A stretch of DNA of 64,000 nt from Takakia lepidozioides. Lineage: Eukaryota; Plantae; Bryophyta. The first letter of the stretch is position 1, and each line of letters opens with the position of its first letter. The stretch lies in NCBI GenBank assembly GCA_030704615.1, contig CM060733.1:29574001-29638000 (forward strand), in the 5' to 3' direction. The notes below the pieces were generated by a model. The model made no database searches. It was not told where the DNA came from and worked only from the letters and a program-made list of their open reading frames with translations. Shown here in pieces: positions 1-52,300 of this stretch. The translations under genes were made by a program, and so were the position numbers.

Positions 1-624
1 GACCACAAGGAGATGATGTCTCTCATACGGGTCAAAGACTGGACTCTCGACCTCTGTAATTACCAACTTCGACGCGAGCTTCTACGACTTGCAGTGTGGG
101 TATGATCCGGAAGCGAGCTAACGGTGACGATACATTTCTGCAGCATTTAAACCCACTGATCTAACGTACATATATAATTTGAGCGGCAACATGACCGGGT
201 TCGCAGGTGTGCTGCTGGAGTCCCTTGCAATCTCCCCAGGCCAGGCCATGTCCGGTGCGGATGAGAGGGCGAGCGTTACTCTGTAGATCATCAGTTGTCG
301 ACCGACAATCAGAATATTGGTCGGGCCTTTCTCTCGTCTCTCTCTTGTCTTCCGGAGAGTTCCTGCAAAGCAACCCACCTACCGCCCCGGAAAGATTCTC
401 CAGCCTTTCTCCAGCTCATTGACGGAACCGTTAAGTCTTTCAAGTCTCTTTACGATACCTGATCTTTACGGCTCTTCCTCTCCGGATCATCCATAACTGT
501 AAAATCAATTGAAATTCGAAGTATCGAGATGTCAAAGTAGCAGAGGTACAACTTCCCACTGGTGTGAACCTGGTCTTCTGAACAGGTCTGGAAAGCAACC
601 TTTGATAGTTTGGAACTCGTGACT

Positions 625-745
625 TTGACATGATACTGCCAAAGTGACAACAGGAAAGTATCCAGAAACAGAGATGAGGAGAAGCTGTGGAATGAATACT
701 TTTCTGACCCCAGTCAAAGTGAATGCCTGTTAGATTACATAGAGT
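625..745 (+). pseudogene. Isolated fragment of an OSB/PDF-motif exon (RDEEKLWNEYFSDPSQ), paralogous to 25530-25680 in the opposite orientation
   Basis: TGACATGATACTGCCAAAGTGACAACAGGAAAGTATCCAGAAACAGAGATGAGGAGAAGCTGTGG...CCCCAGTCAAAGTGAATGCCTGTTAGATTACA aligns by eye with the reverse complement of 25530-25680. The WWDNRxxK part is deleted. Confidence 0.65.
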
Positions 746-2874: not shown

Positions 2875-5800
2875 TCATGTTTCTTCCTCTTCCTCGTCTG
2901 ATTGATGGAAAATGGGTTCGGGCTGTGTTTCGGCATATGCAGGTGCAATGTAAAAGGGATCTGTGACTGCAGCATCCGCATGCTTCAAAATGGCTTCCCG
3001 AGGATCCTCTTCCATCCATGTCTCCTTGATCATCCCACCTTCCTGCAATCATTCACCATGTCCTCTGTCAGGTGTCTCGAGTCTTGGCTGTAAAACCCAA
3101 TTACAACAGACAATATCTGCCATCCAGGGACTGTGGGTAGCTGGTGGGAGGAACAACTGCATGCGCAATTTGAAGTTCCTCTCACAAATGGTCTGGATGG
3201 GAGATCTCACTTCCTCACTTTCAGCACCATTCTTTCAGCAATGTAACTTGCAGTGCAACTAGTCAGCCATTTCTCAGATCTGGGTTCTAAGGGCTACAGT
3301 AGCAGTGCTAGGCCCAATATCAAGCCTCCATCTCAATGCCAGCCCCTAACTCAACCTGCAGACTGTGCCTGATTGACAATAGTTGACCTACAGGAAGTCA
3401 TACACAGCCGATTCAGCTTGGGTTCAAACAAAGGTGGGCAAAACCTCCAAAAGGTAGCTTGTATGCATTTAGTACCCTGTGCGAATCTACCCTCAAGGGC
3501 GCAGTAAATACCCAACAATCACATGAATGTATCTCTCTGAGTGGGTATAAGTTGTATATCACCCATTTTTTGACTCTAAACCATCTGTGAAGGTGTATCT
3601 TATGCCATCCTTTCCGTAAATATTATTTTCTCCCTACGAAACAAACTCTCTCTCTCAAGCATTTCTGATACACTGTCCGGGGTTCTCTCACCAAAGAGAC
3701 GCTCTCTTCAAATCTATTAAGGGAATTGTGCCTGTACCCTGTTTACCAACTTTGAAAGTCTCGAGGCTGAGCCAAAAGCCCAGGCCCTCCTGAGGCCTAG
3801 TTTTTGGGCAAATCACACACAGCAGATTGATGCTTGTGTGAAGGGATTTCTAGAGGATATCTGGAAAACCCGGATTAATTCTTTATATGGAGGTAAGTCT
3901 TACTACCAACGTCAGCCCCTGACAGAGGTAGGTTCTGTCCCTTTTGTTCCCGCTCAAACTGGGCGCGGGGTCAATGGCCACAAGGCTACGGCAAACAACG
4001 TCTTATGAGTACAATCTCTCAAGCATCACTGCAATGTTTGGCCACACCCACCCTATTGCCTGGTCAGCAGCTTTGTACACAACAATATTAGACTACAATT
4101 ACACTTCACCTTAGCTTGCCTATTATGTCACCATGTTAACAACCTGCAATCAGCAAACTTTAGACAACGAAGACCACACTCACCCTCATGAGGTACTGGG
4201 TCAGCAAGCTGCCTTTGGTAGTCCCAACACGTCCCCCAAAGCCAGGCCCAGTGACTGGCAGGTCAGGACGCTTTGACTTCTTAGGGTCACTGCGAGCCTT
4301 CTCTCGGGCCCGCTTTCGGCTGGGCTCATCCCTAAACAAGGGGAGTGCATGTGGGTTATGCACCACTGGCTTCGCCTCGAAGTCTTGTGCAGATTTCTTG
4401 CGTGGTGCCCTGGCAACACATACTAGAGCTCCTCTCTCACTTGACGCTGGATCATACAAAATGTGTGTTCCACCTTCCTTTTTGTCCCCAGTCGTGGCAA
4501 AAATCTGTATGATAAAAAACAAGATCCGACCAGGGTTACCAGCAGATGTAAGTGATAGAATGCCAACAGTCACCTTTGACAAAAACATGCAAAGATAGGA
4601 ATCCACCTGGTTGAGCCGGCGGTGCCAGAGAGAACAAACGATGCTCTGGGTGGCAGAGACACCAACTCTGCGAACAAGATCGAGTCGGTCCTTATCGAAA
4701 AATACCAACAACCCACCCATGTTCCCTTCCTTTTCTATTGATGTCCCTGTTAGAATGAGGCGCTCATCTGGGCTGAATGTAGCAGTGGTCTGTGCATACG
4801 AATTAGGAAGATCCCCAAACACCTTCAAGGCTGCCTTTGTTTGGCGCAAGTCCCATACCTGTCCAGTTTCCATCCAAAACCTTCAGAACTCCATACAATT
4901 ACTCATGTTCAAAGTACTACAGGAAAGAACTAGGATATCTTCTGTTTCTAGGCCCCCAATACACAAGGATCAAACATATGCAAAGACTGAACCAGTGAGT
5001 GCCATACCTTCAGAGTGGAATCAGTGCTCCGAGAAAGAAGGGTGTGGCCATCAGCAGAAAAACAGAGGCCCGTCACATCATCCCCTGCTTCATGGGCTTT
5101 CTCCAGGTAGATGTCAGGCCGACTTCCCCACCCAGGCTTCACACTCCACACCTGTATTGTGTAGACAACACAGCTGGAATTATCAACTCTACCGCTCAAC
5201 AATACTCTGGGTGGATAATGGATATGAACCTACAACCATGTAAATATTGATCAGCTGCAAAGTACCCAGCGAGTGACTTCCCAGTACATTGAGGAGGTGG
5301 TGGCCACCCACCTGGATGGACCCATCAGCAAGACCGCCAGCTACACACTTTCCATCCAGGCCCCAAGAGCAGGCTGTCACCGCCACACGTCCTGGCCTTG
5401 CCAGCTTCGGTTTGATAACCTGCGAGTGCCTCCCCTCACCAATCCATCAGGAGTTGCACAGTGATCTCCACAAATCTCTGTGTCCCTTCCATTACTTCCC
5501 CCTTACAGACAACTTCACTTCTTTGCCACTGTCATGCAGCAAAAGATATTGCATCCCTTCACAAACATAGCAAAAGCACTGTGACCTCAAAGATGTGACT
5601 GCAACCGTGTACGATAGACACATGCGATAGATTTGACACTTCTGATCATAGTCTACAATGTACCACACTATACTGGGGAGAGGACGAAAGGTATGACCAT
5701 GCGCACCTGTTTTTGGCTCTTGAAATTGGTTACATCCCAAATTCTAAGAGACCCATCCTCAGACGAAGTGAGGGCTGTCTGACGCTCCTTGGGATGCCAT

Positions 5801-19729: not shown

Positions 19730-21080
19730 GTGACATGGGGGTGACACCGAACGAGGTGACACCAGATGTCAGGATGTCACACCGGGTGACACTCAATGGG
19801 ATGACAACATTCGGGGTTCGGGGTGACACGGAAGGGAGTGTAATCCCCACTTCGTGGCATGAAATTTGACTTAGTTTGTCTTATGTTGTGTCTATGCACA
19901 TGTGTCGTACACATGTTGAAGCACATGCTGGCAAAGATGGGCTTAACCACATCCGTTCAATGGGTGCACTAGCCATGCACGCATTACAGGATTTATTTTT
20001 TCGCAATGAACAAAAACTGGATGACAGGTGAACGCCTCATTGGCCCATTGAACGAATTTCGATTGATCTCATATTGCTCTGGGACCTGTCTGATGGTACG
20101 TTGAACATGCTGGCCAAGTCTCGAAGTGAACAAAAATCATTTGGATGGGCAACCATCTGTTGGCCCATTGAACGAATTTCGTTTCATCTCATATTATTCT
20201 GGGACCTCTTAGATGGTACATTGAACATATTGGCCAAGTCTAAAAAGGAACCAAAATCATTTCGATGGGCAACCATCCGTTCAACCATCGAATGAATTTC
20301 GATTGATCTCGTATTAGTTGGGGACCTGTGAGAGGGTGTCCCGAACATACTCGCAAAGTTTGAAAGCAAACAAAAATGATTTGGATGGGCAACCATCCGT
20401 TCCGTTCACCCGTTGAATGAATTCTGTTGGATCTGCTATTACTCTGGGACCTGTTGGACTGCGTTTCGAGTGCTCATGATTCTTTTTTCATTCTGTTTCT
20501 GAATCGTATGTGTAATGACTCCATATGCAACGTGCGTGCCGAATTCGGGAGGGAAACAAAATTCATTTGGACCGAGAACCACAGTTTAGCACTCCAAACT
20601 TGATTTGTGTTATACTTTGTGCACTCTTCATAGAGAATTCTGCAATAATGAGCGAGAGATGTCCAACATTTTTCTCTTGGATCTTTTTTTATTGGTCCAA
20701 ATTTTGGGGATGTAGCGGTGGGAGGTTTGAAGCCGCAGAACAAAATTGAGCCAAAAATAAAATCGATACATGGCAAAAACCCCCAATGAAAAGACAGTGT
20801 TGACCTAATTACTAGCTTCAAATTCATTTAAATTCGATTAAATTCTCGAATGGGTTGAGGGCTGAGCACGTCGATGGGAGGCAAATGATTTTGTCTTCTG
20901 TTGTGTCTCTGCACATGTGCCGCACACATGTTGAAGCACATGCTGGCGAAAGATGGGCTTTAACCACATCTGTTCAATGGGTGCATTAGCCATGCACGCA
21001 TTGCAAGTATGAAATGTACTAGGAGAAAGTTACACTAAATACCGGGGTGACACAAACCACATTGACCAAGGTGACAGGGT
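19730..21080. repeat. Probable non-autonomous TE: GGTGACAC motifs at both ends, ~112-bp direct repeats (19875-19985, 20890-21002) and ~3.5 tandem copies of a 120-bp unit (20041-20460)
   Basis: Units start at 20041, 20161, 20281 and ~20405 and share GAATTTC...GGGACCT...GATGGGCAACCATC. The direct repeats share CACATGTTGAAGCACATGCTGGC...AGCCATGCACGCATT. Confidence 0.7.
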
Positions 21081-21859: not shown

Positions 21860-23033
21860 CCCATGCACTGAGAACACACATTTCTGGTGTTACGCATTCC
21901 CGTTGCATTTGCTCGTAGATCTCAATAGCCTCGCTGCCAGATCCATGCTTTGCATATCCTGATATCATTGTAGTCCATGTAAACACATCTCGTTGAGGCA
22001 TTTTGTCAAACACTTGGAGTGCCTCGACCTTGTTCCCACACTGGGAATATATAATGTTTGGCTTAAATCCACTTTGCACCTGCTTTCCAATTTCTAGGTC
22101 TTTACTTTGATGCACTCTTGCAAGAGACAGACATTGGTCTTGTAGTCTGCCAGAAAATGTCGTTGGTTCAAAATGTGCAGCGCATCTCGCAGTTGTCCTG
22201 CCTTACACAGTCCTCCATCAAATCTAGTGGTTGTGGTGGAGCTTCCAACTGCACCTGCTTCAACACTAGCATGACAAACTCCGAGTTCTTCAGTTGACAG
22301 AAAAAAATGAGAAAAAATTCTGCATTTCTGTTAGATAATAACAGGGTCACAGAACTATCGCTTTCCTTAGCACCTATCTACTGAACTAACTGTATCCATT
22401 CCATCAGCTATTTGGTACCCCTAAAACATCACCACAAAATACCTGTTGTATTCTTAGCCTGGAACTCCATAGTGCACACCAACCTTATTGCCAGAATAAT
22501 GTGCTGAAAAGGCAGCTAACTTTGTTTTCACCCAAGTAGGGTTCGACCAACCCTCAATCCAAAGGACTTCATTAGTGCACTTATGTCTGAAGTCTGCTGA
22601 TCTTGGGCTACTCTGTCAAAACCACCAGTGGGCCAGCTGAGCAGCTGTGGCTTGAACCACAGCCTTGCATAGACCAGGCTACAAGCATCTTTCACATACA
22701 AGGGAACAAGACTGAACAACATCCTCACAGCAGCAGTAAGAGACTTTGCTTCTACTTTTACGGTTATGAGGAAAACCATCACCACAACACCAGCATGAGA
22801 CATCTGCCCACCTCAACACAAACTCTTTGACGTCCTAAATGAAGACAGCTTCACCCGTTATCCCACCACTGTGAAGGATCTGAGAAGAACTCCTGCCAGA
22901 GCTGTTCTTTGTTCATTGCTTGACCTGCATGCAGGGACTACAAGGGCATTAGAACTTTGCAAGCTAGGATTGACTCATAAAAGAGATCTTTAGCAGATAG
23001 TAACAGGATTCAGGAATTCTTATGTAGATTTCC

Positions 23034-23069
<36 letters not shown>

Positions 23070-25680
23070 GGAGAGTGCCCGTTGTGTGGGCAACCTGAAG
23101 ACATTTTCATTTCCCGATTCATTGTCCGGGGTTCTCTCACCAGAGAGACGCTCTCTTCAAATCTATCAAGGGAATTGTGCCTGTACCTCTGTTTACCAAC
23201 TTCGAAAGTCTCGAGGCTGAGCCAAAGCCCAGGCCCTTTTGGGGCCTAGTTATTGGACAAACCACACACAGCAGGTTGATGCTTGTGTAAAGGGATTTCT
23301 AGAGGACATCTGGAAAACCCGGATCAATTGTTTATTCCAAGGTAAGTCTTACTACCGGCGCCAGCCACTGACAAAGGTAGGTTCCGTCCCTTTGTGTTCC
23401 GCTCCAACTGGGCGCGGGGTCCATGGCCACAAGGCTATGGCAAACAACGTCTTATGAGTACATTCTCTCTCTCTAACATCAGTAAATGTGCAGTGGTGGC
23501 ATTCAACGACCGAGGGGAGGGAGGAGGTGATCTCAAGTAGCAGTGGGGAAGCCAAGAGATACCAGTAGGGATCAACTCTGAAGTAAAAAATAACATGCAT
23601 TGCTGCGTTATTGGGCCTGCCTTGGAGTACGCATCTGCAGCATGGGTTGATGACTCCAACCAGGCTAAGTCTCTAGAATCCATTCAAGTGGGGGTGCTTA
23701 AGGAGTGCATGTCAGCATACTCCAAAACAGCCAACGTGGCTGTTAGGGGTGAGTTTGACATCCCTTCCTTGAGCTCCCAACGAGATGAATTCAAGGTCAG
23801 ATGGTGGGGTCAGCTGCAACATATGTAAAATATAAGATATCCTAAGTTAGTCGACTCTATACATTGGAAGCAGGATCGCCTCCTGTCAAACAGGCTGAGT
23901 CCTGGCGGAAGAGAGTAGAAGAGATTCTCAAGGATCTGAATCTAAGCCCGCAAGTCTTGACCCTGCTGGATAAATCTGACTTGAGGCTGTAGTCCAAAGC
24001 CATCTCTGTTGCCAGGAAATTGTCTGATGAAAACAAAGTTAGGCAGAAAGCTTCCCTGAACTTGTTTCCAGTCTGTTACATGGGAGAGGCCATCATGGAT
24101 GACCTCAAGGGTTTACCCACCATCGGCACTAGACTGGAATTTAAACTCAGGGCGGGAAGCCTACCTTTGAGCAGCAAACAGACGCAGAGAGGAAAAGAGG
24201 ATTCATTCGTTATGGTGTGGGCAACCTGAAGACAATATTCATTTTCTGATTCATTCTCCTGGGTACTCTCATGAGTGAGACGCCCTCTTCAAATCCATCA
24301 AGGAAATTCTGCTCGAACCTCTATTTACCAGCTTAGAAAGTCTCGAGGTTGAGCCAAAAGCCCAGGCCCTTTTGGGGCCTAGTTATTGGGCAAACCACAC
24401 ACAGCAGATTGATGCTTGTGTGAAGGGATTTCTAGAGGATATCTGGAAAACTCGGATTAATAGTCTGTTCCAAGGTTAGTCATACCACCGGCATCAGCCC
24501 CTGACAAAGGTAGTCTCTGTCCTTTTGTGTTCCGCTCAAACTGAGCACAGGGTAAATGGCCACAAGGCTACTGCAAACAACATCTTATGAGTACATTCTC
24601 TCTCTCTTTCTCTCTCTCTTGGCAATGCATTGGGTCGCACTAGAGGGATCAACTCTGAAGTCAAACAACCATGCTTTTCTGGCTATTAAGTCCTACCTTG
24701 GAGTACGCATCTGCTGTGTGGGTAGATAACTCCACCAGCTAAGTCCCTCAGATCCATTCAAGCGGGGTGCTCAGGAGTGCATGTCAGCATTCTCCAAGAC
24801 AACTAATGTGGCTATTCGGGGTGAGTTAGGCCTTCCTCCCTTAAGCTCCCGACACGATCAACTCAAGGTCAGATGGTGGGGTCAGCTGCAACGTATGACT
24901 AATAGCAGATATCCTAAGTCAATCGACTCTATATCTTGGACGCAGGAGCGCCCTATCAAACAGGCTAAGTCCTGGCGGAAGAGGGTAGAAGAGATTCTCA
25001 AGGATCTGAATCTAAGTCCGCAAGCCATGACCCTGTTGGATAAATCTGACTTAGAGGCTGAACTTTCCAAAGCCATGTCTGTTGCCACGAAATTGTCTGA
25101 TGAAAATGAAGTTAGGCAGAAAAACTTCCTGAACCTGTTTCCAGTCTGTGACAGGGGCGAGGTGAATCTGGATGACCTCGAGGGTTTACCCACTCTCGGC
25201 ACTAAACTGAAAGTCAAACTCAGGGCGGGTAGCACCTTTGAACAGCAAACATTGCATAAGGACAGGGGGATTGTCCGGGTAGTTTCTGTCCCTTTGTGTT
25301 CGGCTCAAACTGGGCGCCAGGTTTATGGCCACAAGGATACGCCAAACAACGTCTTATGAGTACATTCTCTTCTCTTGAGTCTACTCTCTCTTTTTGATTT
25401 GTTCTAGCAAACACCCAAACCCTACTTATCAGGTTCTTGTACCATCCACAGGGAATCATAGGCGAATGGTCCTTGGAGAGAAGAGATGAACATTTCCCAA
25501 CAAAGCCTTGCATTCTTGCTGTCTGCTTCTCTCTGTAATCTAACTGGAATTCACCTTTTTTCCTCCATTGCCCCACCTTTGACTGGAGTCTGAAAAGGAT
25601 TCTTTCCAAGGCTTCTCATCATCTCTGTCCTCTGTTTTTGGATACTTTCCTGTTGCCACTTTGGCAGTACCATGTCACAA
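21860..25680 (-). pseudogene. PDF-motif (OSB-like) + PLS-PPR pseudogene, copy 2, interrupted by a stack of LINE fragments
   Basis: Exon ~25680-25555 (RDDEKPWKESFSDSSQRWGNGGKK|gt), exon 22924-22855 (MNKEQLWQEFFSDPSQWWDN), exon 22612-22443 (SSPRSADFRHKCTNEVLWIEGWSNPTWVKTKL). PPR remnant ~22260-21860 (ALQVFDKMPQRDVFTWTTMISGYAKHG...EAIEIYEQMQRECVTP). Stops and frameshifts are present. Confidence 0.8.
23039..25375 (+). mobile_element. Three head-to-tail 5'-truncated copies of the (TC)n-tailed LINE (~23068-23475, 23476-24620, 24621-25370), starting at a (CT)14 run
   Basis: Each copy matches part of 48485-49730 and ends AAACAAC(G/A)TCTTATGAGTACATTCTC(TC)n. Each copy starts right after the preceding TC tract. 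Confidence 0.9.
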
Positions 25681-26184
25681 TCAATCCAACCCACCATCGA
25701 TCCACCCAACAAGCTACCATGCGAAATTCAACATGAAAAATTAGGGACGACGCTGAAAGAGGGAAAACAGGCCATGGCATTGCGTTAAGAAGGGTGCCCT
25801 CGACACCGCATTATCCTTGACCTTGTGTCGTGAAAGCAGCTAGCTTTCTTCCCCCAACGGAGAATTCAAAAACAGTTTCTTGCAGAGCATACCGAGATTC
25901 TGACTTGCCTAAACAACTTGTACAATGCAATGAATACATGTTTGAATGGCATCCCTGAACCTCACACACTACATTCACTAATAACTTACGCTGCTACCGA
26001 ATCCAATACTCACCTACTCTTCTTCTTCTTTGTAGAACAGAGGGTAAAGTAGCCCTCGACGGTTGGAAAAATTCTAGCGACGACCACTGAAGGTTGGAGA
26101 CTAGTTTTAGCGTAGAGCATGAACAGGGTGCCATAGTGCCACGTCATCGTCGTCAGCCATTTGGAACCTACCCGAAATGCCCGA

Positions 26185-28188
26185 AAACGAGACCACATCC
26201 CGCTAACCGTTTGTCGAGACTCCACACATCCACTATACTCCCACATTTGGCATACGTGTCAATAAGGTTTACTACACATTAACATCTGGTGCAATTCCAG
26301 CTTTGATGATGTCAGCATGGACCTGCTTGCCAATTAGGCTAGCACACTCATTGAGAACAGAAACGAAAGTGCTCCCGTTGGGCATCACCCGATCTTGTTG
26401 CATTCTCTCATACATTTTGAGAGCATCATCACCTTTGCCATGGTGTGCATATCCTGTGATCATCACATCCCATGAGACCACATCTCGTTTGGCCATTCTG
26501 TCGAACACTTGACGCGCTTCCATTAGGCTCCCGCATTTCGAATATGTGTCAACAAGGCTATTCTCCAAAATAATGTCTGAAGCAATTCCAGCTTTCAGAG
26601 CTTCAATGTAGCATGGACCTGTTTGCCCTTTTCCAGGACTTGTAGGCTAGCACATGCATTGAGAGCGCTTGTATGTGACTCTGTCAGCTGTCACCCCTTC
26701 TGATCGCATTTTCTCATAGATTTTGAGAGCCTCTTCACCATGTCCACACTGAGCATCTCCTGAGATCATCGCATTCCAAGAGACCACATCTCGTTTGGCC
26801 ATTTTTGCAAACACTTGAGTGCTACCTCCTTGTGCTCCCACATTTGGCATATGTGTCAATTAGGGCATTCTCTAAATTGATGTATGATGGAATTTCAGAT
26901 TTGAAGATATCAGCATGGACCTGCTTGACCTTTTCCAGTCTCCTCGGTTGGCACATGCATTCAAACAACAAATTGTAAGTGACCCTGTCAGGAGTCACCC
27001 CTTTGCATTGCATTTGCTCATAGATCTTGAAAGCCGCCTTGGCATGGTTGTGCTTGGACTATCCTACATCAGCAATTCCAGTGAAATATTTCGTTCATGC
27101 ATTTTCTCAAACCCTTGTCGTGCATCTGACATCTTCCCACACTTTGCATACATGTGGACAAGGGTGTTGCCTAATAAAATGCTTGGCTTCAATCCACTTC
27201 CGAGAATGTTGGAATGCACCTGCTTCCCAAATGCCAGGGCTTTCATGTTGGTGCAAACGCTGCAAGATAAGGACATAACTTTTGGAGTCTGCTGGAACGA
27301 ATCCTTGGTTCAGTATGTGCAGTGCCTCATTCAGCCTTCCCTCCTTACACACTGCTCTCACGCCAGCCCGGCTGGCAGCCTGGTGCCCATCCCCGTTGTA
27401 ACGATGTACCCCTGCCATCCTAAGTGACTCCCAACTCCTAGTCACGAACTTTGCTCCAAAACATATGAGAGTTTCTACATACTTTAAAGTAAGATCTCTT
27501 TAGGAGCACAAGCATGTAACAGGGTTACGTGCTGACCTGGCCATCCACTTGAAAAGAAACTATCATTCTAATCTGTTCAAGTTGAAACATTGCAATCATC
27601 TATCGTGGAACGATACCTGTTGTACTCTGTGCCTAGAGGTCCATTGTGCATACCACCATTAAATTGTGAGTGACCTTGTGTCATAGCAGATACCTCTGCT
27701 CTCGCCCAAAGAGGGTTTGACCGACTCTCCAACCATTGAGCATCCTTCGTACACTTCTCTTTGAAGTCTGGATATTTTGAAATCTGTGAAAAACAGTGTG
27801 CAGCTGAGCAGCCACACTTTCAAGTTTCTTTCAACCAGTGTCGAAGTACATGCCCTTCAAAACGCATGAACGACTCCTGATACCAACAAATAGAACCACT
27901 TTGAATTATTTAAGAACAGAAAGCAAGGTGAGCCACACCCTCATTTGTCCTGGTTTGAATGCTCATTAAAGTGCTTTTATTTCTTTCACCCACAAAAAAG
28001 CCAAGATAGTCCAATCTCTATAAGCCCCTGTGATTAAATCAAGCCCACAAAACATAATACAAGCTTTGACGAAGGCCCTCTTTGACACACCCTTCAGTTG
28101 ATAGCCTCACCTTCACAAACTTGTTCTCGCAGCGCTGTGAAGGATCTGGAGCGCTCCTGCCAGAGTTGTTCTTTGCTCCATGATTGGC
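26185..28188 (-). pseudogene. PDF-motif (OSB-like) + PLS-PPR pseudogene, copy 1
   Basis: Exon 28188-28111 (KEQLWQE/DPSQRCENKFVK|gtgagg), exon 27783-27617 (ISKYPDFKEKCTKDAQWLESRSNPLWARAEVSAM). A frameshifted P-L-S array follows at ~27440-26185 (VRAVCKEGRLNEALHIL; GKQVHSNIL; LGNTLVHMYAKCGKMSDAR; RDVVSWNAMISG; ENSLVDTYSKCGSLMEARQVFDRM). Confidence 0.85.
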
Positions 28189-29818
28189 CTGTTTCCCCAA
28201 AACTGCCAGAACATGAGATTTTTGCCCACTTCGAATTGACTCCTATCTTTGTGGACCAGTGATAGTGTAGCTTTGGGTAACATTTATTTAACTCAATCAA
28301 GTCTTCTACGTAAAATGAGAAAACAGATTTTTTTCTCAACTTGCTGAAGGAGCTCAATATGGAGGCCACTCTTCAAGCTTGAGAACCTAGTTCTTTTTTA
28401 AATCATCAGGACCTAAGGACGAAAATCCGTGGCAGACCCGTTGCAGTGGTAGGATTACACTTGGTTTGCCTGCATTCAAGGACCATCTATAACATAAAGT
28501 TCTAGCAGAATGTATTCGCACGGCTTTCATTGAAGAATCATAGTGGTAGGCATCCACAAGCCAATTGTTTCTCTTCCCTTCTTTCCGGCCTTTCCCATTT
28601 GCAAGGGTGAAGTTGGATGGCTTTTCACTGCTCTGGAGGGACCACAGCAGTATCTGGCTGCCCTTGAAATTCACACCTACTGCCTTTTCAGTGTGGGAAG
28701 GCAGTAACAAAATTATTAGCACCTTTTGGAACTTCAGGCAGAACATCTGCTGTTATGGACAAGCGCTCTCGTACCAATGAAAAGAACAGGGTCGACGTAT
28801 CCTCCTGAACGCATTATCTTATGGCCATGCAAATGTCTGTCCAGGGAATAAATATCTCTCTCTCAGAGCAACGAATGCAGAAAAACCGTACCAGAAATTC
28901 CGGCAGCTGACACGGTTGGACAAGGGTCATTCTCGCCCTCCTGTTCATCCCTTGTTAGACCATCCTCTAAACGTGTTCGGCCAAAATGGATCGTTCTGCC
29001 ATTATATGTGAGGGATAGTTTTGAGCTTGTCTGGCTCCGCCGCAGGGTACACGTGACCATGGCTCTCCCTGAAGATCTTCTTGCCAATTTATCTATGTCA
29101 TGATGGCTGGTTTCCCTGCAGGATCACGGACGATTCTGACTTTCTCTATAAATGTGCTCCTCTGTTTGCAGGTAGCTGGAGCACTTTGGAGCCATGGAGC
29201 ACTTAACAAGCATTCTTATATCTAAGAGGCTTCATTACCACAATAATCCTTTTTCGAGGAAGTACTGTTTCAAAGAAAACACACCACTGTGCTCACAACA
29301 GCAAGACATGGCAGCACTCTCTAGATATTCAGTTTCTATGGCGCGACTGACATCGTTCTTACCACAAAACTCCCAGATTTTCCATTGGGCACCACAGAGT
29401 TTCCCTTGAACGACAATGCCAGCAATATTGGGGGTTTCACAAATGTTAGGATAATAACTCTGCCCGCAAAGGAAGGTAGGCAGTGTGCGCGGGAATTGAA
29501 GGAGCAGCTCTGGGAGGCATTCGCGACGAGCGAAGCAGAGAAGAGCGGAGGGGCAGAGTGCTATCGTAAATGCAAGATCTTTGAGGCCTTCCAAGGTCAC
29601 AATTTTCTCAGATGGACTCCATCCAGATCTCATGTGCCGAAATGAGCCTTGTCCCAAATCTCAAGGACACCCTCAAATATCAGGTTTTTAGCCTTCTCTC
29701 GCCCTCTATTCACGCTAAAACTGGCAGCAGCTGGACAGGGAAAACATTGAAGACAACTGAGAAGAGATTTATAGAGCTCTGGCATGCACGCGGCGGTGAG
29801 GACAAGGGAGAGTACCTT

Positions 29819-30058
29819 GCACCACGGTAGCTCAGTTGGATAGAGCACTGAGTGCCACCCAGGTGATTCTGGGTTCAAATCCTGTCACCTTGTTGGGTGT
29901 GGTATGTTCTCCTCCCCATTCCCTTGGGTGGTTTTCCTAGAGTCTTGTGCTCGGCGCCTCATGGCGAGGTTAGTATGAAAGAGGTTATTTTCTCCTCTGG
30001 CATGATTTGTGAGCGGTTGCTCAGGGTATTTTTTCCTTTTTTTAGATATTAAAAAAAA
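29819..30058 (+). mobile_element. tRNA-Gly(GCC)-derived SINE candidate or tRNA pseudogene
   Basis: GCACCAC start, A-box TAGCTCAGTTGG (29828-29839), TGCCAC anticodon loop and B-box GGTTCAAATCC (29872-29882). The acceptor stem cannot be closed. A ~150-bp body follows, ending in T/A-rich runs. Confidence 0.6.
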
Positions 30059-39955: not shown

Positions 39956-42034
<2,079 letters not shown>

Positions 42035-43363: not shown

Positions 43364-46300
43364 CTACAAACAGTCGTTTCTCATGAAATCAAAAAAGTTG
43401 TCAGCCACTGCAGCAGCTGCTGAATCATAGAACAGCACCCGTTTCCGAAATGCACGCAGAGAGCGCTTGTCTTGAGGTGTAGCGCACTGAAACTCATTCC
43501 ACACACGCATAGAGTGTGAAATTTCCATGTATATGCAAGTATGGACACTATGTACTTTGCAACACTGAATAGTTTGGAGAACAAAGGACTTTGGTACCTG
43601 GGATTTTGGATCCAGAACAATGTTAGCTTCCATTGCAATGTTCTTTAGGATGCGCGAAAGGCGGAGGAAACTTACAAAGGACTTTTTCCTCAAGAGGATA
43701 TCCGCAAGGTAGTGAATCCACAGGCAGTTGGTCTTAGGGAATCTGTTACAAGCGGGTTAGTCAACTCGAACCAACTTCACAGCTGTTCCTGCAACCTATC
43801 ACTACATCTTCCATTCCAACTCAACCTCCTCATGGACAACATATCATAATTATTGAGTTCTTAGCACAGGCAAGTTTGGGCAAACATTGTGTGCCTGAAC
43901 AATCATATCTTTCCTTGAATTGAATTTTCTTGGGCTACTGGATGAGCCAAAAATATGGCCTGGTTCTCCTAAGTTGACTGGCAAACAAAGGTGGCAACAA
44001 AGACTTCGAGGACATGCATCAAAGTAATGCCTCACAAATGGAGAGAGCTATCAACATATGAGTGATAAGTGATAACCACCAGGAGGGCCAATACAGCTTA
44101 AAAGGTTGGATCCAATTTGTACTCCAAACTTGAGCACCCTTTGATGGTTGGGCAAACTTCATTTCTATAAAAGCAGACACATTTGTTGCTTGAGTAAAAT
44201 AAAACCTCCCTGCAGCAATTGATAGCTTTTTACAACTATGAAGGTGAGGAGCCAGCACTTACCGTCCTTCCCATTGCCCTCCTGTAACTCGGAGCATTTG
44301 CCGGTATGTGTCTGCCTGTAACCACATCAGTGCACTTTCCAGGAGTCAGATGATGAGTACCAGTAGTCAGCATCGGCTGACCCTCCACTTGGGCACCCGT
44401 TACGATGCATAGATAGAAGGGTTCCTGCCAAGTATCTATTCTGGCATTAGAGGAAAAATTGGAGGTGTGGTAAGAGAATGGGACCTACACAAAGAGGTAT
44501 AAATTCCAGTGAAAAAAGGAAGATACAGATGGAACTGGTATTTACCTGAATATCACCTTTCTGGCCCTCAAACAGAGCTGGATCGGCTGACAAATTGCAA
44601 AACTGCACTTGCTTCCCTGCACATATTCACTAAAGCTAGAGTTTCATATCCCGCATAGGAAATTCGCAAATGAGAAAACGGCCCTAGCACATGCACAATA
44701 AGTCGCTGACTGCAAATCAAGGCCCTTTTCACAAGCATTCCACAGCCCCTCCATATGAGGTGCTCTTTTGCAGCATTATTCGATGTTGCAGTCAGAATGT
44801 CACATCTGTGTTAAGCAGAGGGCTACCTGACCAGTGCTACAGGGCTTTATCATAGCATGTCATCGTCAACACTTACAAAAACACTGTATAACATAAAACT
44901 CTCTCCCTGTCCTCTAGGAAGCCTATTGCCATTGGGTGGACTTGATACGGGAGTACATTAATGTCTCTGTGACTAAATGCCGGCCTTGTGACCTCGTGTC
45001 TTTGTTTGTTTCGACCTGAAGCGCTTTGCTCCAGGTAAGGTAGTGCATTGGATTTAGTTGGAAAGCTTGGGGCCTTTCCCTCTTTAGAATATGCCTACAC
45101 GGGCCATTCCCTGCAACTCCCTGGAGTGTGATCTCTGAATGGTAACAAGCGGACCCCTACCGCTTGGGGGCAGCCCCTCCGCCCAAATTGGGCAGGCGTA
45201 TGCTCTGTCTAGCATACTCGGCACTTGGGCTCGGGTTGGTTCTTGTGCTTAAGCTTATGGCCTGCGACAACAATCAAAATCTTATCCCCTATCAACATTA
45301 ACACTCCTCAGGGTGATTCCTGGGAATTGGTTACTTATGCCAAATCTAGGACTTCATGTGTAGTTTTTGGGGTGAATCCCAGGATGGACGATGTGTCCTT
45401 TAAAACTACATGCTCTAGCTTAGGCTTGAATTTCATGGCTGATGGTTCCATCTCGAGACTTGATAACAGGGGTACGTTGAAGGTTGCAATGCCCAAAAGT
45501 GCTTCTAATAGAGTCCCACATCAATTCAATCTCAAAGAAGTTCGTCCCTTGACTGGCTGGAGAGCGGTCTTAGACATTGGTGATTCAATGGGGCGCTCTA
45601 GGAAGACAACCAAGGGCAGGGACTTCAACTTGAGAGTTTCTAATCGGTTTGATGCTCTGGATGAGGTTGAATCCAAACAGCCAAACGGACAATCTGCCCC
45701 TAAGTGTACGGAACCTGAACGTCCTGTATCTGAAGGATTTGGTACTCTGAATGGTTTACCAATCCTCAAGGTTTACACAAGACGAGCAAATTCTATACAC
45801 GGGGTAATTGTCCCCAAGCCGTCAGATGGACAATCTGTCCCTAAGTGTGCAGAGCCTGAACGTCGTGTAACTGAAGGATTTGGTACTCTAAATGGTTTAC
45901 CAATCCTCAAAGTCTACACAAGACGAGCAAAATCTATACACGGGGTAATTGTCACCAAGCAGTCAGACGGACAATCTAAGTGTGCGGAGCCTGTACGTCG
46001 TGTAACTGAAGGATTTGGTACCCTGAATGGTTTACCAATTCTCAAAGTTTACACAAGACGAGCAAAATCTACACACGGGGCAACTGTCCCCCCTTTGCAG
46101 AACGGTTGGCCGTCCAGGAGCCACAAGCTACCTAGACGACAAACAATTCATATGCAACGGGCTGGCTTGTGGCTGGGCACTTCCAATTTCTCAGGGCTGA
46201 CTAACCAAAGGAAACAACTCGAAGTGGCACAAGTTCTTCAGGCCAATAACATTCATATTTGTGCTGGTCAGGAGACATGGGAAACACCGGATAAATTGGT

Positions 46301-49300
46301 TGGAGATGTCAATGGGTATAAGTGGACGGGAAAGATGTGTACTCTGAAGGCAGCCTCTGCCAAATGCGGCCAAAAAGGGGTTGGATTCTTTGTCCGCGAT
46401 TTCTTGTTTGATAATTGTGAAATTATCAACAAGGGTTTGAGGTATGAGCATAGTATCTGGCTAAAACTGAATCTGAATACGAAGGACCTCTTTGTGGGTT
46501 GTGTATACATGCCCACAGAGGGGACCCTTAGTGTTGACGCAGACAAAGCCTTCGAAGATGTAAAGCTGGACTGTGCTTCGTTCCTTGCCAAAGGTCAGGT
46601 GGTTCTATTGGGTGACTTCAAGCCCGGGTGGGCAAAGGTCTCCATCAGGACGATATCATTGGGCCTTTTGGTGAGGACGAGCTGAATTCTAATGGCAGAA
46701 GGTTAATTAACTGTCTGGAAGAGCTTCAGCTTTTGACCTTGAATAACAGGACAAGAGGTGACCAAGTGCAGTGGACTCGTGAGAAATCCCAAACTGGGGA
46801 ACGTTCCATTGTGGACTATATCATAATGGACAAAAATTTGTTTCCCCAGTGTGCCAAATGTGTTGATCGACAGAACTGATATTGGTACCTCTGACCACTT
46901 CCTGGTTTGGACTGAGATCAAAAGGTGTTTTCCCAACACCAAGAGATCTGTGAAACGTTCGATTCGGAAGTGGCGCATAGAAAAATTCCATAATGAGGAG
47001 GTCAAGGCTGAGTATGTCCAGGCCTTGCAAAAGGCTCTCCCTCATTTTGTCCACTCGTTCCCAGAACTTCAGTCTCGCTCTGACAATGCAAGAAATGAAG
47101 TCGAAAGAGCAGTGTACTATTGGGAGAGTTTTGTTTCCTGTGGCTGACAAGATCATTGGAAGGAAACTAATTGTCTGCGGTAGAGCTGTGGACCAATGAG
47201 ATTAAACTCAAGATAGCTGAGAGACGAGCCCTCTATAAAGAGTGCTGCAATTTGAAAACCAACAGAGAATTGTGGGCGAGGTACTACCAGCTCCGTAAAG
47301 ATATCAATCAGCTTGTTAGGTCTCAGAAGAAATTATACTGGGACAAGTTATACAGTGAAATAAACTCAAACCACCATGGTGGTAATGACAAGAAATTCTG
47401 GTTGGCCCTTCAACGTTTGTACAAGCCGAAAAACGGTCAGCAAGTACAAGCGCTGAAGCCTACTAAAGGTGCAGTGGTGACTTCATCGGTTGACATTGTC
47501 AAAACCTTTGAAACTCACTACAGTATCCTTGGCAGAACTTCTAGGTCTAACAGTGAGGGGGCTTCTGCTGAATGGAGGGACACAGTTAGAAAAACTGTTC
47601 CTATGATTCAAAACAGCCCTGATGAACTGGAGTATATTTCAATGTCTTATAACGCTCCCATTAGTTCTTCTGAGATTGTGGAAGCAATTGAACATTTAAA
47701 TGGATATAAAGCTGGTGGACCTGATGGTATAGTCAACGAGCTTATCAAGCACGGTGGCGATCCCATGATAGAGGCCCTAGTTCTCCTCTTTAACCTTATC
47801 TGGAAGACTGAAATGATCCCCTTTCGCTGGCGACAGGGGGTCATTGTCAATCTATACAAGAAAGGTGACAGAGAAGAACCGGGGAACTACCGTGGCATCA
47901 CGCTCCTCAATGCTGTTGGCAAGACATTCTGCAGAGTTATAAGTACTCGTCTCGAGGTTGATCTGGAGTCTAGAGGTCGAAGGCCAAGCTGGCTTTCGGC
48001 GAAACAGGGGCTGTATGGATCATATCTTCACTCTAAGCCAGATTATCCAGGGAAGGAAAAAAGAAGGGAAACCAACTTATGTTTTTTTCCTGGATGTCAA
48101 AAAGGCTTATGACACAGTGTGGAGAGATGGCCTATGGTTCCGCCTCTGGTCTTGTGGGATCAAGGGAAAGATGTGGAGAGTTGTCCACAACTTGTACGCT
48201 CACGCCAAAAGCTGTGTCACTGTTAACGGACAGAAGTCCAACTTCTTTGACATAGACCAAGGTGTAGCTCAAGGATGTACTCTCTCCCCTCTGCTCTTCA
48301 ATGTTTTCATCAATCAACTCCTCGAGGATGTGGAAAGTGAGGGATTTGGGTTAAGGGTGGGTGATACCACCATACCAGCCCTTATGTTTGCGGATGACTT
48401 CGCAGGCATAGGGGAGACTCCAACCAATCTCCAGGAGTTGATTGATTGCGCGAAGAGATACTTTGATCTTTGGGGTTAGAGGCTAATGTCAGCAAATGTG
48501 CAGTGGTAGCATTCAACGACAGAAGAGAGGGAGGAAGTGATCTTAAGTGGCAGTGGGGTAGCCAAGAGATCCCGGTCCTCCCTTCCTACACTTACCTGGG
48601 CGTTGAGTTCTCCTCCAATTGTAATTGGGATGCACATATCCGGAAAGTTGTTCAAACTGGCAAGGGCAAAGCTCTGGGGCTCACTAAATTTTTCCACTGC
48701 AGAGGGGTCAACTCTGAGGTTAAGAAAACCATGCTTTGTCGCGTTATTAGACCTGCCTTGGAGTACCGATCTGCTATATGGGTTGATAACTCCAACCAGG
48801 CTAAGTCTCTAGAATCCATTCAAGTGGGGGTGCTTAAGGAGTGTATGTCAGCATGCTCCAAAACAGCCAATGTGGCTGTTCGGGGTGAGTTTGGCATTCC
48901 GTCCTTAAGCTCCCGACGAGATAAATTCAAGGTCAGATGGTGGGGTCAGCTGCAACATATGTCCAACACCAGATATCCTAAGTTAATCGACTCTATATCT
49001 TGGAAACAGGACCGCCCTGTCGAACAGGCTAAGTCCTGGCAGAAGAGAGTAGAAGAGATTCTCAAGGGCCTGGACCTGGAACCGCAAGTCTTGACCCTGC
49101 TGGATAAATCTGACTTAGAGGCTGTAGTGTCCAAAGCCATGTCTGTTGCCATGAGATTGTCTTATGAAAATGTAGGCAGAAAACTTCCCTGAACTTGTTT
49201 CCAGTCTGTGACATGGGGGAGGACATCTTGGATGACCTCAAGGGTCTACCCACTCTAGGCACTAGACTGAAATTTAAACTCAGGGCAGGAAGCTTACCTT

Positions 49301-52300
49301 TGAACAGCAAAGAGAAGCAGAGAGGAAAGGGAGAGTGCAATAGCCCGTTGTGTGGGCAACATGAAGACAGTATTCATTTTCTGATACACTGTCCGGGGTT
49401 CTCTCACCAAAGAAACGCTCTCTTCAAATCTATCAAGGGAATTGTGCCTGTACCCCTGTTTACTAACTTTGAAAGTCTCGAGGCTGAGCCAAAAGCCCAG
49501 GCCCTTCTGAGGCCTAGTTTTTGGGCAAATCACACACATCAGATTGATGCTTGTGTGAAGGGATTTCTAGAGGATATGGAAAACCCGGATTAATTCCATA
49601 TATGAAGGTAAGTCTTACTACCAACGTCAGCCCCTGACAGAGGTAGGTTCTGTCCCTTTTGTTTCCGCTCAAACTGGGCGCGGGGTCAATGGCCACAAGG
49701 CTACGGCAAACAACGTCTTATGAGTACATTCTATGACATAAAACTAAAATATCAGGCCAGTTTTATTCAGTGGTCCATAAAACTCTCCCGGGAGGGTGGC
49801 GTTACTCAATGGGACGTGCCCCTCAAGGGTGATGGTCCAACACTCTATGAGTTGATCCACAGAGCCAGCATAAGATTTGCAGAGAGCTTGTTGTCTACTC
49901 TGCACATCTTTGACCTGGAGCTTGAAGCAAGAGAGTTGATCCTTCAGCCCCATCACAAGGGAACAGCTGTTGAATTTTGTCATGGTAAGCGAGACAAGTA
50001 CTCCTTAGACCGCTTGCTCCAGTCTTGTGGCCATAAACCCACCCCCAGGCAGAATGCTGTTGACAAAGATGCAAAGGAGGAAGAACACAACTTTCCAACA
50101 TTATAAGGCAGAGATCAACCCCAACCTGTATCAATGCGGGAGAGGGTGAAGTCAATGAGAGACACAGAGAGGCCAAAAGTTTTTACACGTATATCGTGGC
50201 CATGCAACCGGTATAGCACAGTCTCTTGCTTCTCTCGGGCCAGCACAATGTTACCCCTGCATCCAGTCCCTTCAGCATCAGTACAGTAGTAGCTGGCTAC
50301 TTTAATATTTTCAAGTAGAGGAGATTAAAACAAGCATTTAAATTAAAACTCAAAAATTGATCCCTCATCTTCGATGGAAGTTGGTTCTTCCCAAGTCAGC
50401 ATTTGTAAGGCACCAAAACTGAACAGGACTTCTGAGGTATGCTAAGCATGGAATCCATCCATGGGGTCCAACTTGGTCAAGACCACCCATGTCACCATGA
50501 GCCCTTCGTATAATATAATAGGGACTAGGAGAATGACCCTTTTCACTGCAAAACAGACATAAAGGCAGGATAGAAATTGAACCAGTGCAAGTCCCGATGC
50601 TCAAATTCACAGGCCTCTTCTGCAACTGCCAGCGCCAGTACAACCTGCATCCATGTATATGGGCATGCAAAAATCTCCAGGATAATGTGATCATGATTGC
50701 TATGACACATCTGTGAATACTCTTTGCATAATGATGTGAAAATATTGGGAAAATATCAGTATCAGTGTTATTTTTTAATCTCTAGGTGAGAGGAGTCTGT
50801 TCATTATCAGTGAAACTTCCGCTGCTGTATGGAACAGGCAGTTTACCTGAAGCAGGACAGTGCAAGCTTCATTGAAATCAGCCAGCACAAACCCCTCCAA
50901 ATCTTTTCCACCATCTGACAACACAAAAACGACATACAACTGCTTGCCCTACCTCTTCATCAGTTTGTCATCCAACTCGTCAAGGTAGTGGCATCAGAAA
51001 GCTGGTTATCTCTCTGGGGTTTCAAGAACAGCAGAGCAATGAATTTGGTTCATAGAGATCTTTGTGATTTCGAGGGCACACCCAGGGGACAAAAGACAGA
51101 CCTGCTACTAAAGAGAGAAGATACACAGACCTGTTGATCTGGAAAGATCATGGGGTGATCATTCTCTGAAGTGTGAGCTGCATCCCAGTCCTCCCATGCA
51201 CGAACCAAGTTAGGATCGTAGCAGCCCTGACAAATGCGTGTGCTGCCACACATCAGGTCCCCGCCCCACCCCGCCCCGGCCACCCCTTTGTAAGCAACCT
51301 TCATCCCTAATCCTCAGTCTCTGGCCTTTTTTAAGTTGTGTCCTTTTACCCACACACAGCCAACTTAATAAAATCAAATGGAAGTTATTTTCCACTTACG
51401 CTTTGGTCTCGATGAAGTTGGTGCATATGTTGGTGGCGGTGGCTGGGCTACCACGCAGTTTGTTCAGCGCATTGGAGAGCAGCACTTCACTGTACATGTC
51501 ATCTGATGTCTGTAGCCATCCATAAGATTCAAGGGTGACCCAAGTGAAACATTTTTAGACATTGAAAATTCAAAGACAAGAGAAACAAACCATTTTCTGG
51601 TAAGCATCTGATTACTACCTTCTGAATTTCACCATTGACTTGGAAATTGCCGTCCATGGGGACAATCTTGAAAACATTGCCACCTGCTTTGAAAGCCTCT
51701 CCAAATGTGCCTTCCCCCAACTTGACAACTTCACTCATGTCACTGCCCCACAAATCACCAGCAAAGAAAACAATGTAAGGCAAGTTATTAGCTGCTTCAA
51801 AATTGCACACTTTGACTGAAATAAGTGACATGTTTAGCTTCCATTACGCTAGCTTGAGCACCTAGGTCTGTGACACAACAGTTAAGAAGTATCTCCAGGA
51901 GCAAAGGGGTGGTGGAGCATTTGCAGGCTTTCTTGGCCTGGAAGCAGTAGCCAACTAGTGGATATTGTTCCAGCTGCCGAACAGCTAATCCTTGTACATC
52001 TCATAGACAAATAATCATAGAGATGAGCTCAAGCAGCCACACGTACAAACCAGAAGTGGGAAAGGGCCTCTCTCAAAGTCAGCACCCGTGTCTGGCCACA
52101 TTCTTGAAGAAGTGAATGGAAAACAGAGAGCAGTTCCTGTCCCAAATGTACCAATGGCTGCTCCTCTTTGTCTATATCTGCCAACTTCACTCACGCCCAC
52201 ATAGCAATTTCTTTGTCACAATGCAGTTCAGTTTTGGCCACATAAATTTGTTAATTATCTCAGACAGGAGAGAATTAACTCAAAGACCAAGCACCTTGGC

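Follow-up and report, generated by a model that had tools for sequence, protein, structure and literature searches.

A 64-kb stretch of the genome of Takakia lepidozioides (Bryophyta; contig CM060733.1, positions 29,574,001 to 29,638,000, referred to here as the window) carries two loci lying in tandem on its minus strand, U (28188 to ~26131) and D (25611 to ~21860), in which exons resembling the PDF module of plant OSB proteins precede exons encoding pentatricopeptide repeats (PPRs) of the PLS class. OSB proteins are organellar single-stranded DNA (ssDNA) binding proteins (reviewed in PMC6963530, PMC4166229, and PMC13393729), and in AtOSB1 the PDF motif is sufficient to bind ssDNA (reviews including PMC4166229). 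Both loci follow the same exon plan, composed of the first half of a PDF module, an intron, the second half of the module followed by a linker, a further intron, and a PLS-PPR exon (Table 1). A preliminary description of this DNA, made from the sequence alone, had proposed this common arrangement; translation of the minus strand between 21.6 and 28.4 kb recovered every string that it quoted at the place given for it, and the splice coordinates that it proposed (28111, 27783, 27617, and 25555) all fall on canonical GT/AG sites. The same description had reported an extra PDF half-exon, which does exist in degenerate form; its placement, however, required correction, as the half-exon belongs to the downstream locus D, upstream of D exon A, where it is probably module 1 of that locus with its second half gone.

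Table 1. Exons and interspersed repeats of loci U and D (positions in the window; a slash marks a splice junction; HMM, hidden Markov model; LINE, long interspersed nuclear element).
Feature	Position	Strand	Sequence and evidence
U exon A, PDF first half	28188-28111	-	Acceptor aaacag/ at 28189; ends ..KFVK/gtgagg; donor AAG/GTGAGG kept
U exon B, PDF second half (..YPDFKEK..W..NP.W..) and linker	27783-27617	-	167 nt, open; starts cacag/ISKYPDFKEK; reads ISKYPDFKEKCTKDAQWLESRSNPLWARAEV..EYN(R)/gtatcg; phase 0 at start, phase 2 at end; OSB-only and PPR-linked PDF HMMs
U PLS-PPR exon, ~12 motifs	27419-~26131	-	Starts cttag/G ATG GCA..; Pfam PPR matches
Degenerate PDF first-half exon between U and D	25611-25555	-	Reads ..KPWKESFSDSSQRWGNGGKK/gtgaat; internal string ..PWKESFSDSSQRWGN..KK/gtgaat; end ..GGKK/gtgaat; donor GT at 25554; HMM scores; 82% identical copy at 620-719 (+)
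Tandem LINE 3' fragments between the half-exon and D exon A	23068-25370	+	84-90% identity to 48483-49732 and 3660-4020
D exon A, PDF first half, motif intact	22924-~22854	-	Starts tgcag/GT, phase-1 acceptor; reads ..EQLWQEFFSDPSQWWDN; OSB-only PDF HMM
D exon B, PDF second half and linker	22612-22443	-	Starts gacag/SSPRSADFRHK; reads ..ADFRHKCTNEVLWIEGWSNPTWVKTKL..; OSB-only PDF HMM
D PPR remnant, ~3 motifs	~22330-21860	-	Pfam PPR 1.3e-14; tblastn to PDF-PPR proteins

Both halves of the PDF motif are present at these loci, the first (W..FF..P..WWDN(R)..K) in D and, frameshifted, in U, and the second (PDFKHK.T...LW.....P.WV...L) in D and U alike. The P-L-S triplet (35+36+31 aa) appears as a 306-nt internal repeat of the window, and the Pfam models PPR, PPR_2, PPR_1, and PPR_3 scored above cut-off on several window pieces, indicating that tandem P-L-S motifs are present. 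Alignment of the DNA of U and D revealed that they are paralogues, with parts of their introns aligning as well. Neither locus retains an intact PPR reading frame. In U, comparison with the DNA of D exon A revealed a 2-nt deletion in exon A and the conversion of both Trp codons of the WW pair to Arg and Cys, while a minimum-cost path of frame switches and stops has to read through at least seven stops or frameshifts in the PPR exon and meets zero disabling events in exon B. In D, a 10-nt deletion relative to U has eliminated the last part of exon A and the donor that followed it, exon B contains an in-frame TAA five codons ahead of its donor and an Ala in place of the Pro of PDF, and the PPR remnant, with a stop and a frameshift, has at least one disabling event on the minimum-event path. 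In addition, 2.3 kb of LINE fragments set the upstream half-exon apart from D exon A. No similarity to E or DYW domains was detected in or after either locus, even at an E-value of 50. These lesions bear out the earlier judgement that both copies are pseudogenes, U being interrupted throughout its PPR exon, D being truncated, and both being devoid of E and DYW, and on this reading of their sequence neither is able to make a protein. As the introns are kept in U and D, their DNA further indicates that they arose by DNA-level tandem duplication, and not by retroposition, and then decayed.

Pfam contains no model matching the PDF exons and reported only PPR repeats. To assess their resemblance to the OSB module, a 58-column profile made from the two second-half exons (exon B of U and of D) was searched against 1.84 billion representative proteins, with exons searched separately and never as a joined spliced protein. 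This search identified 240 proteins at E<=1e-3, 30 of them at <=1e-10, with a best E-value of 6e-34. When the best 150 of these 240 were sorted using local HMMs and phmmer, 50 were found to have an SSB-like OB domain and 14 to have PPR arrays, none had both, and the other 86 were mostly single exons called as open reading frames (ORFs) and multi-PDF proteins. Pfam confirmed the SSB domain in five SSB+PDF proteins (P0007, P0018, P0019, P0028, and P0046), which score 1e-8 to 1e-21 with the two-exon profile, and confirmed PPR and the E motif in ten PDF+PPR proteins (P0008, P0020, P0022, P0080, P0076, P0111, P0114, P0118, P0042, and P0129); DYW_deaminase was found in two of the ten checked.

We then examined the window with an HMM of 122 PDF modules taken solely from OB-bearing proteins (the OSB-only HMM), using as target all 3575 stop-free six-frame segments of the window (117,331 translated residues). 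Significant matches were obtained to D exon B (E 7.3e-12, HMM positions 23-54), U exon B (E 1.8e-7, HMM positions 25-53), and D exon A (22854-22937 (-), E 3.2e-6, HMM positions 2-18), and to nothing else in the six-frame window, where the next best E-value was 0.1. The assignment of these exons to the OSB PDF motif in the preliminary description is thus upheld. The two exon B matches are partly circular, since the proteins behind the HMM were fished with exon B, and the library-wide E-values are independent of this; the D exon A match is independent of how the OB-bearing set was gathered. A second HMM, built from 21 PPR-linked modules, gives these exons better scores (1.9e-8 for U exon B), and matches the degenerate half-exon at 3e-4, versus 1.5 with the OSB-only HMM, and a fragment at 634-744 (+) at 6e-3. 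PPR-linked modules themselves match the OSB-only HMM end to end, with E-values of 1e-24 to 1e-26. The second half of the upstream module of D was not found by either HMM in the whole six-frame window.

In intact relatives the PDF exons and the PPR array form one gene. The 1281-aa product of the Diphasiastrum gene O6H91_21G032400 (L002) was mapped exactly onto its DNA, revealing a transit-peptide exon, the first half of PDF-1 (..WWDKRFDK/gtgaga), the second half of PDF-1, the first half of PDF-2 (..WWDNRYIK/gtgtgg), the second half of PDF-2 with its linker (tag/KSPKYPDFKHK.., with a phase-2 donor after the linker), and a PPR part encoded by one 3.2-kb exon. The plan of the window loci (half A, phase 0, half B with linker, phase 2, single PPR exon) agrees with that of this gene exon for exon and phase for phase, which accounts for the phase-1 acceptor of D exon A and explains the upstream half-exon as a first module that has degenerated. 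In the Logan contig L001 (SRR4210093), a single uninterrupted ORF of 1371 aa (4.1 kb) encodes three complete PDF modules as well as a PPR array and an E motif. As genomic copies split each module, L001 is most simply a transcript, and PDF and PPR are in frame either way. Together, the Diphasiastrum gene and this continuous ORF establish, for intact members of the family, the in-frame linkage of PDF exons to PPR repeats that had been proposed. A further contig from ENA, L005, carries two split PDF modules followed by PPR-E-E+-DYW ORFs; it has the linker most similar to those of the window loci, and no DNA in common with the window was found in it. At the protein level, the U PPR exon is 35-39% identical to PDF-PPR proteins (tblastn).

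PDF-PPR proteins were found in the lycophyte Diphasiastrum complanatum (for example KAJ7517631 and KAJ7568880, and, with DYW, KAJ7542974 and KAJ7518482), in Sphagnum species among the mosses, in the liverwort Riccia sorocarpa, and in the fern Adiantum capillus-veneris. All are labelled as hypothetical or PPR-containing. When the PDF regions of two intact proteins were used to seed word searches, at least 83 and at least 57 proteins were retrieved, all with PPR and many with DYW; they derive from at least ~78 separate Diphasiastrum loci, from numerous loci of Sphagnum, and from Calypogeia fissa. In a maximum-likelihood tree of 127 modules (55 columns, mostly poorly resolved), PPR-linked modules cluster, with 7 changes versus 13.5 when labels were shuffled. 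Within PDF-PPR proteins the module nearest the PPR tract is the best conserved and modules upstream of it decay, and the conservation of the proximal module argues for retained function.

The relationship of the module to that of OSB genes extends to gene structure. In L003, a genomic Logan contig with an OSB gene fragment, an SSB-like exon (E 2e-11) is followed by ..WWDNRKNK/gtattc, an intron of ~550 nt, and tttacag/KNPKYPDFKHK.., so that a phase-0 intron interrupts the motif where it is also interrupted in the PDF-PPR genes. Many short ORF-called matches from OSB-like exons likewise start their similarity exactly at the intron point. This common intron position indicates that the PPR genes and OSB genes have PDF modules that are homologous at the exon level, and the two exons of the module were probably transferred or amplified together. 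OSB and PDF-PPR proteins thus have in common a PDF module of ~50 residues with the same internal phase-0 intron, repeated one to three times in PDF-PPR proteins, and presumably an organellar location. Unlike OSB proteins, PDF-PPR proteins have no OB fold, carry PDF at the N-terminus and not at the C-terminus, and combine it with a PLS-PPR array with E/DYW. No SSB-like OB segment was found anywhere in the window (best E 1.8), nor in any of the 14 PPR-bearing matches, and U and D are therefore not OSB genes. A 2026 survey of OSB evolution makes no mention of PPR and admitted proteins only if they had OB as well as PDF; with these requirements PDF-PPR proteins would have been filtered out. Two other architectures were encountered among PDF proteins. 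Three proteins of ~200-245 aa (P0090, P0115, and P0134) have a transit-peptide-like N-terminus and one PDF module, of the variant PKYADFKNK, with neither OB nor PPR, and constitute a third PDF architecture. Proteins P0001-P0006 contain 5-12 PDF-like stretches in up to 1160 aa, with a weak SSB signal at most, a multiplication of PDF far above that reported for OSB proteins, which have one to five copies.

Outside the two loci, the window contains a tract at 39976-42027 (+) of nine tandem 228-nt units (88% matches) within a 685-aa ORF. As each unit starts with the N-terminus of ubiquitin, this is a polyubiquitin gene with nine repeats, and probably the sole clearly functional gene seen in the window. 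A LINE-like element at 45225-49732 (+), with ORFs of 486, 313, and 240 aa, is a fuller copy of the element whose 3' end recurs as the tandem fragments within D and once at 3660-4020. At 620-719, on the plus strand and thus opposite to the loci, lies a degenerate copy of the half-exon together with its 5' flank (82% over 107 nt), with no PPR nearby. A 27-nt inverted pair (81%) at 21052-21078 and 29881-29907 brackets both loci, and one of its arms runs into GGATTTGAACCC, a string resembling a tRNA T-arm; this likeness suggests that the pair probably represents the ends of a short interspersed nuclear element (SINE) or another tRNA-derived sequence and not transposon termini.

Taken together, we consider it probable (roughly 0.87) that U and D are dead members, duplicated in tandem at the DNA level, of a PDF-PPR gene family of seed-free land plants whose module is homologous to that of OSB at the exon level. 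Intact members of this family encode a transit peptide and one to three PDF modules, each of them divided between two small exons by a phase-0 intron. A short linker then leads to a PLS-class PPR array, in most cases followed by E motifs and a DYW cytidine deaminase. U would then have kept the exon plan, with a frameshifted first-half exon and a PPR exon full of stops and frameshifts, and D would have retained good PDF exons while losing splice donors, gaining a stop, being split by LINE insertions, and having its PPR array cut to ~3 motifs. Several observations weigh against this interpretation. The closest proteins are 35-70% identical; the putative first module of D has no second half, and its first half scores weakly; the copy at 620-719, either a stray fragment of the family or a sign that such pieces become dispersed, lends transposon capture a small probability; and the poorly resolved module tree is compatible with one as well as with several origins of the fusion of PDF to PPR. 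With respect to function, OSB1 and OSB2 prefer ssDNA over double-stranded DNA and RNA (PMC4166229), such that a role of PDF in RNA binding is not a given.

Three other explanations were weighed against the family of PDF-PPR genes. As the exons are short, with 17-32 informative residues each, their likeness to PDF might be a chance match of Trp-rich short ORFs; this is refuted by the library-wide best E-value of 6e-34 and the independent first-half match at 3e-6, with nothing comparable elsewhere in the window. It might also be supposed that the PDF exons and the PPR array are adjacent, separate genes, namely an OSB-like remnant next to a PPR gene, with no fusion between them, a view to which the usually intron-poor nature of PPR genes lends some weight. 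Such an arrangement is very improbable given that no SSB-like OB exon accompanies the PDF exons in the window, that the same order is found twice in the window, with matching splice phases in O6H91_21G032400, in L005, and as one ORF in L001, and that ~130 database proteins combine PDF and PPR; for the family as a whole, the continuous ORF of L001 rules it out. The remaining explanation is that U and D are pieces of genes that a transposon (Pack-CACTA, Helitron, or similar) picked up and rearranged, and not genes that decayed in place. The recurrence on the other strand, at 620-719, of a 107-nt piece with the upstream half-exon is in keeping with capture, as is the loss of E and DYW from both loci. 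However, no CACTA-type terminal inverted repeat pair (at least 22/30 matching; CACTA..TAGTG) is present anywhere in the window, no long inverted repeat was found around U and D, and the sole inverted pair flanking the loci has the appearance of tRNA-derived SINE ends. Moreover, both loci still conform to O6H91_21G032400 in the order of their parts, in their introns, and in their splice phases, which is unusual for shuffled captures, and we therefore regard capture as unlikely.

The PDF-PPR genes may also be compared with PLS-class PPR-E-DYW editing factors, with which they share the P-L-S periodicity of 306 nt seen in the window, the Pfam domains PPR, E, E+, and DYW_deaminase in intact relatives, and the formation of large lineage-specific families in lycophytes and mosses. 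They differ from these factors in that additional small exons give them a PDF module at the N-terminus, and the window copies U and D differ further in being dead and without E/DYW. The nearest precedent for the working of a PDF-PPR protein is PPR4, an RRM-PPR protein that in maize has an N-terminal RRM (PMC9459714), and in which an accessory domain that binds single-stranded nucleic acid likewise precedes the PPR tract. Unlike PDF-PPR proteins, PPR4 has an RRM fold and P-class PPRs and acts in splicing, and no homology is implied. The extra domains described for Physcomitrium PPR proteins are RRM, LAGLIDADG, SMR, NYN, CBS, and SAP, with PDF not among them (PMC9459714), and a kingdom-wide survey of PPR fusions does not include PDF (PMC13386178). 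Full-text searches returned no paper tying the PDF motif to PPR proteins, most subscription papers lying outside the literature searched. The combination of PDF and PPR is thus real and of old standing, and, within the literature that could be searched, seems not to have been described before.

PPR tracts bind RNA with their N-terminus toward the 5' end. A PDF module N-terminal to the tract would thus lie on nucleic acid 5' of the recognized sequence, or on nearby single-stranded DNA. In intact members it would most likely act as a sequence-independent grip on single-stranded nucleic acid next to the N-terminus of the PPR tract; such a grip could add affinity for the transcript or hold an editing factor on single-stranded nucleoid DNA. 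The coupling of ssDNA recognition to RNA binding at R-loops, nucleoids, or sites of co-transcriptional editing, put forward in the preliminary description, is speculative. We tentatively favour auxiliary single-strand binding as the role of PDF, at somewhat less than even odds; that it specifically tethers the protein to ssDNA or the nucleoid is less likely, and the rest of the probability falls to something else, such as protein contacts, import, or assembly. A fragment containing PDF was modelled confidently with AlphaFold2 (maeb06467c839, from a 72-row alignment; pLDDT above 90 over residues 21-80). In the model, a first helix is followed by three short strands and then by a long second helix. 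Comparison of this model with solved structures gave no usable match (Foldseek PDB best E 2; VIA wide best Z 4.2), and the structure thus offers no further functional hint.

The relics at U and D document, within the PDF-PPR family, tandem duplication with retention of introns followed by decay, while the expansion of PPR genes is usually ascribed to retroposition (PMC13386178). In the family as a whole, a conserved, multi-copy OSB module stands at the front of ~100 or more editing-type PPR proteins of lycophytes, mosses, liverworts, and ferns, and is absent from domain databases and from the surveys consulted. PPR-DYW editing factors are the subject of intensive study and of efforts to engineer programmable RNA editors, and OSB proteins protect the genomes of organelles from illegitimate recombination. 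To our knowledge, seed-free land plants are without the MORF helpers of seed plants. PDF-PPR proteins provide a testable handle on how editing factors find and retain their substrates without MORF, and on the role of the PDF fold. It is conceivable, and in our estimation rather improbable, that a large share of the editing factors of seed-free plants use an OSB-derived PDF module to hold nucleoid ssDNA, coupling editing to transcription or to intermediates of recombination or replication. If this were true, PDF-PPR proteins would form a physical link between the maintenance of organelle genomes and RNA editing, one that was lost or replaced in seed plants.

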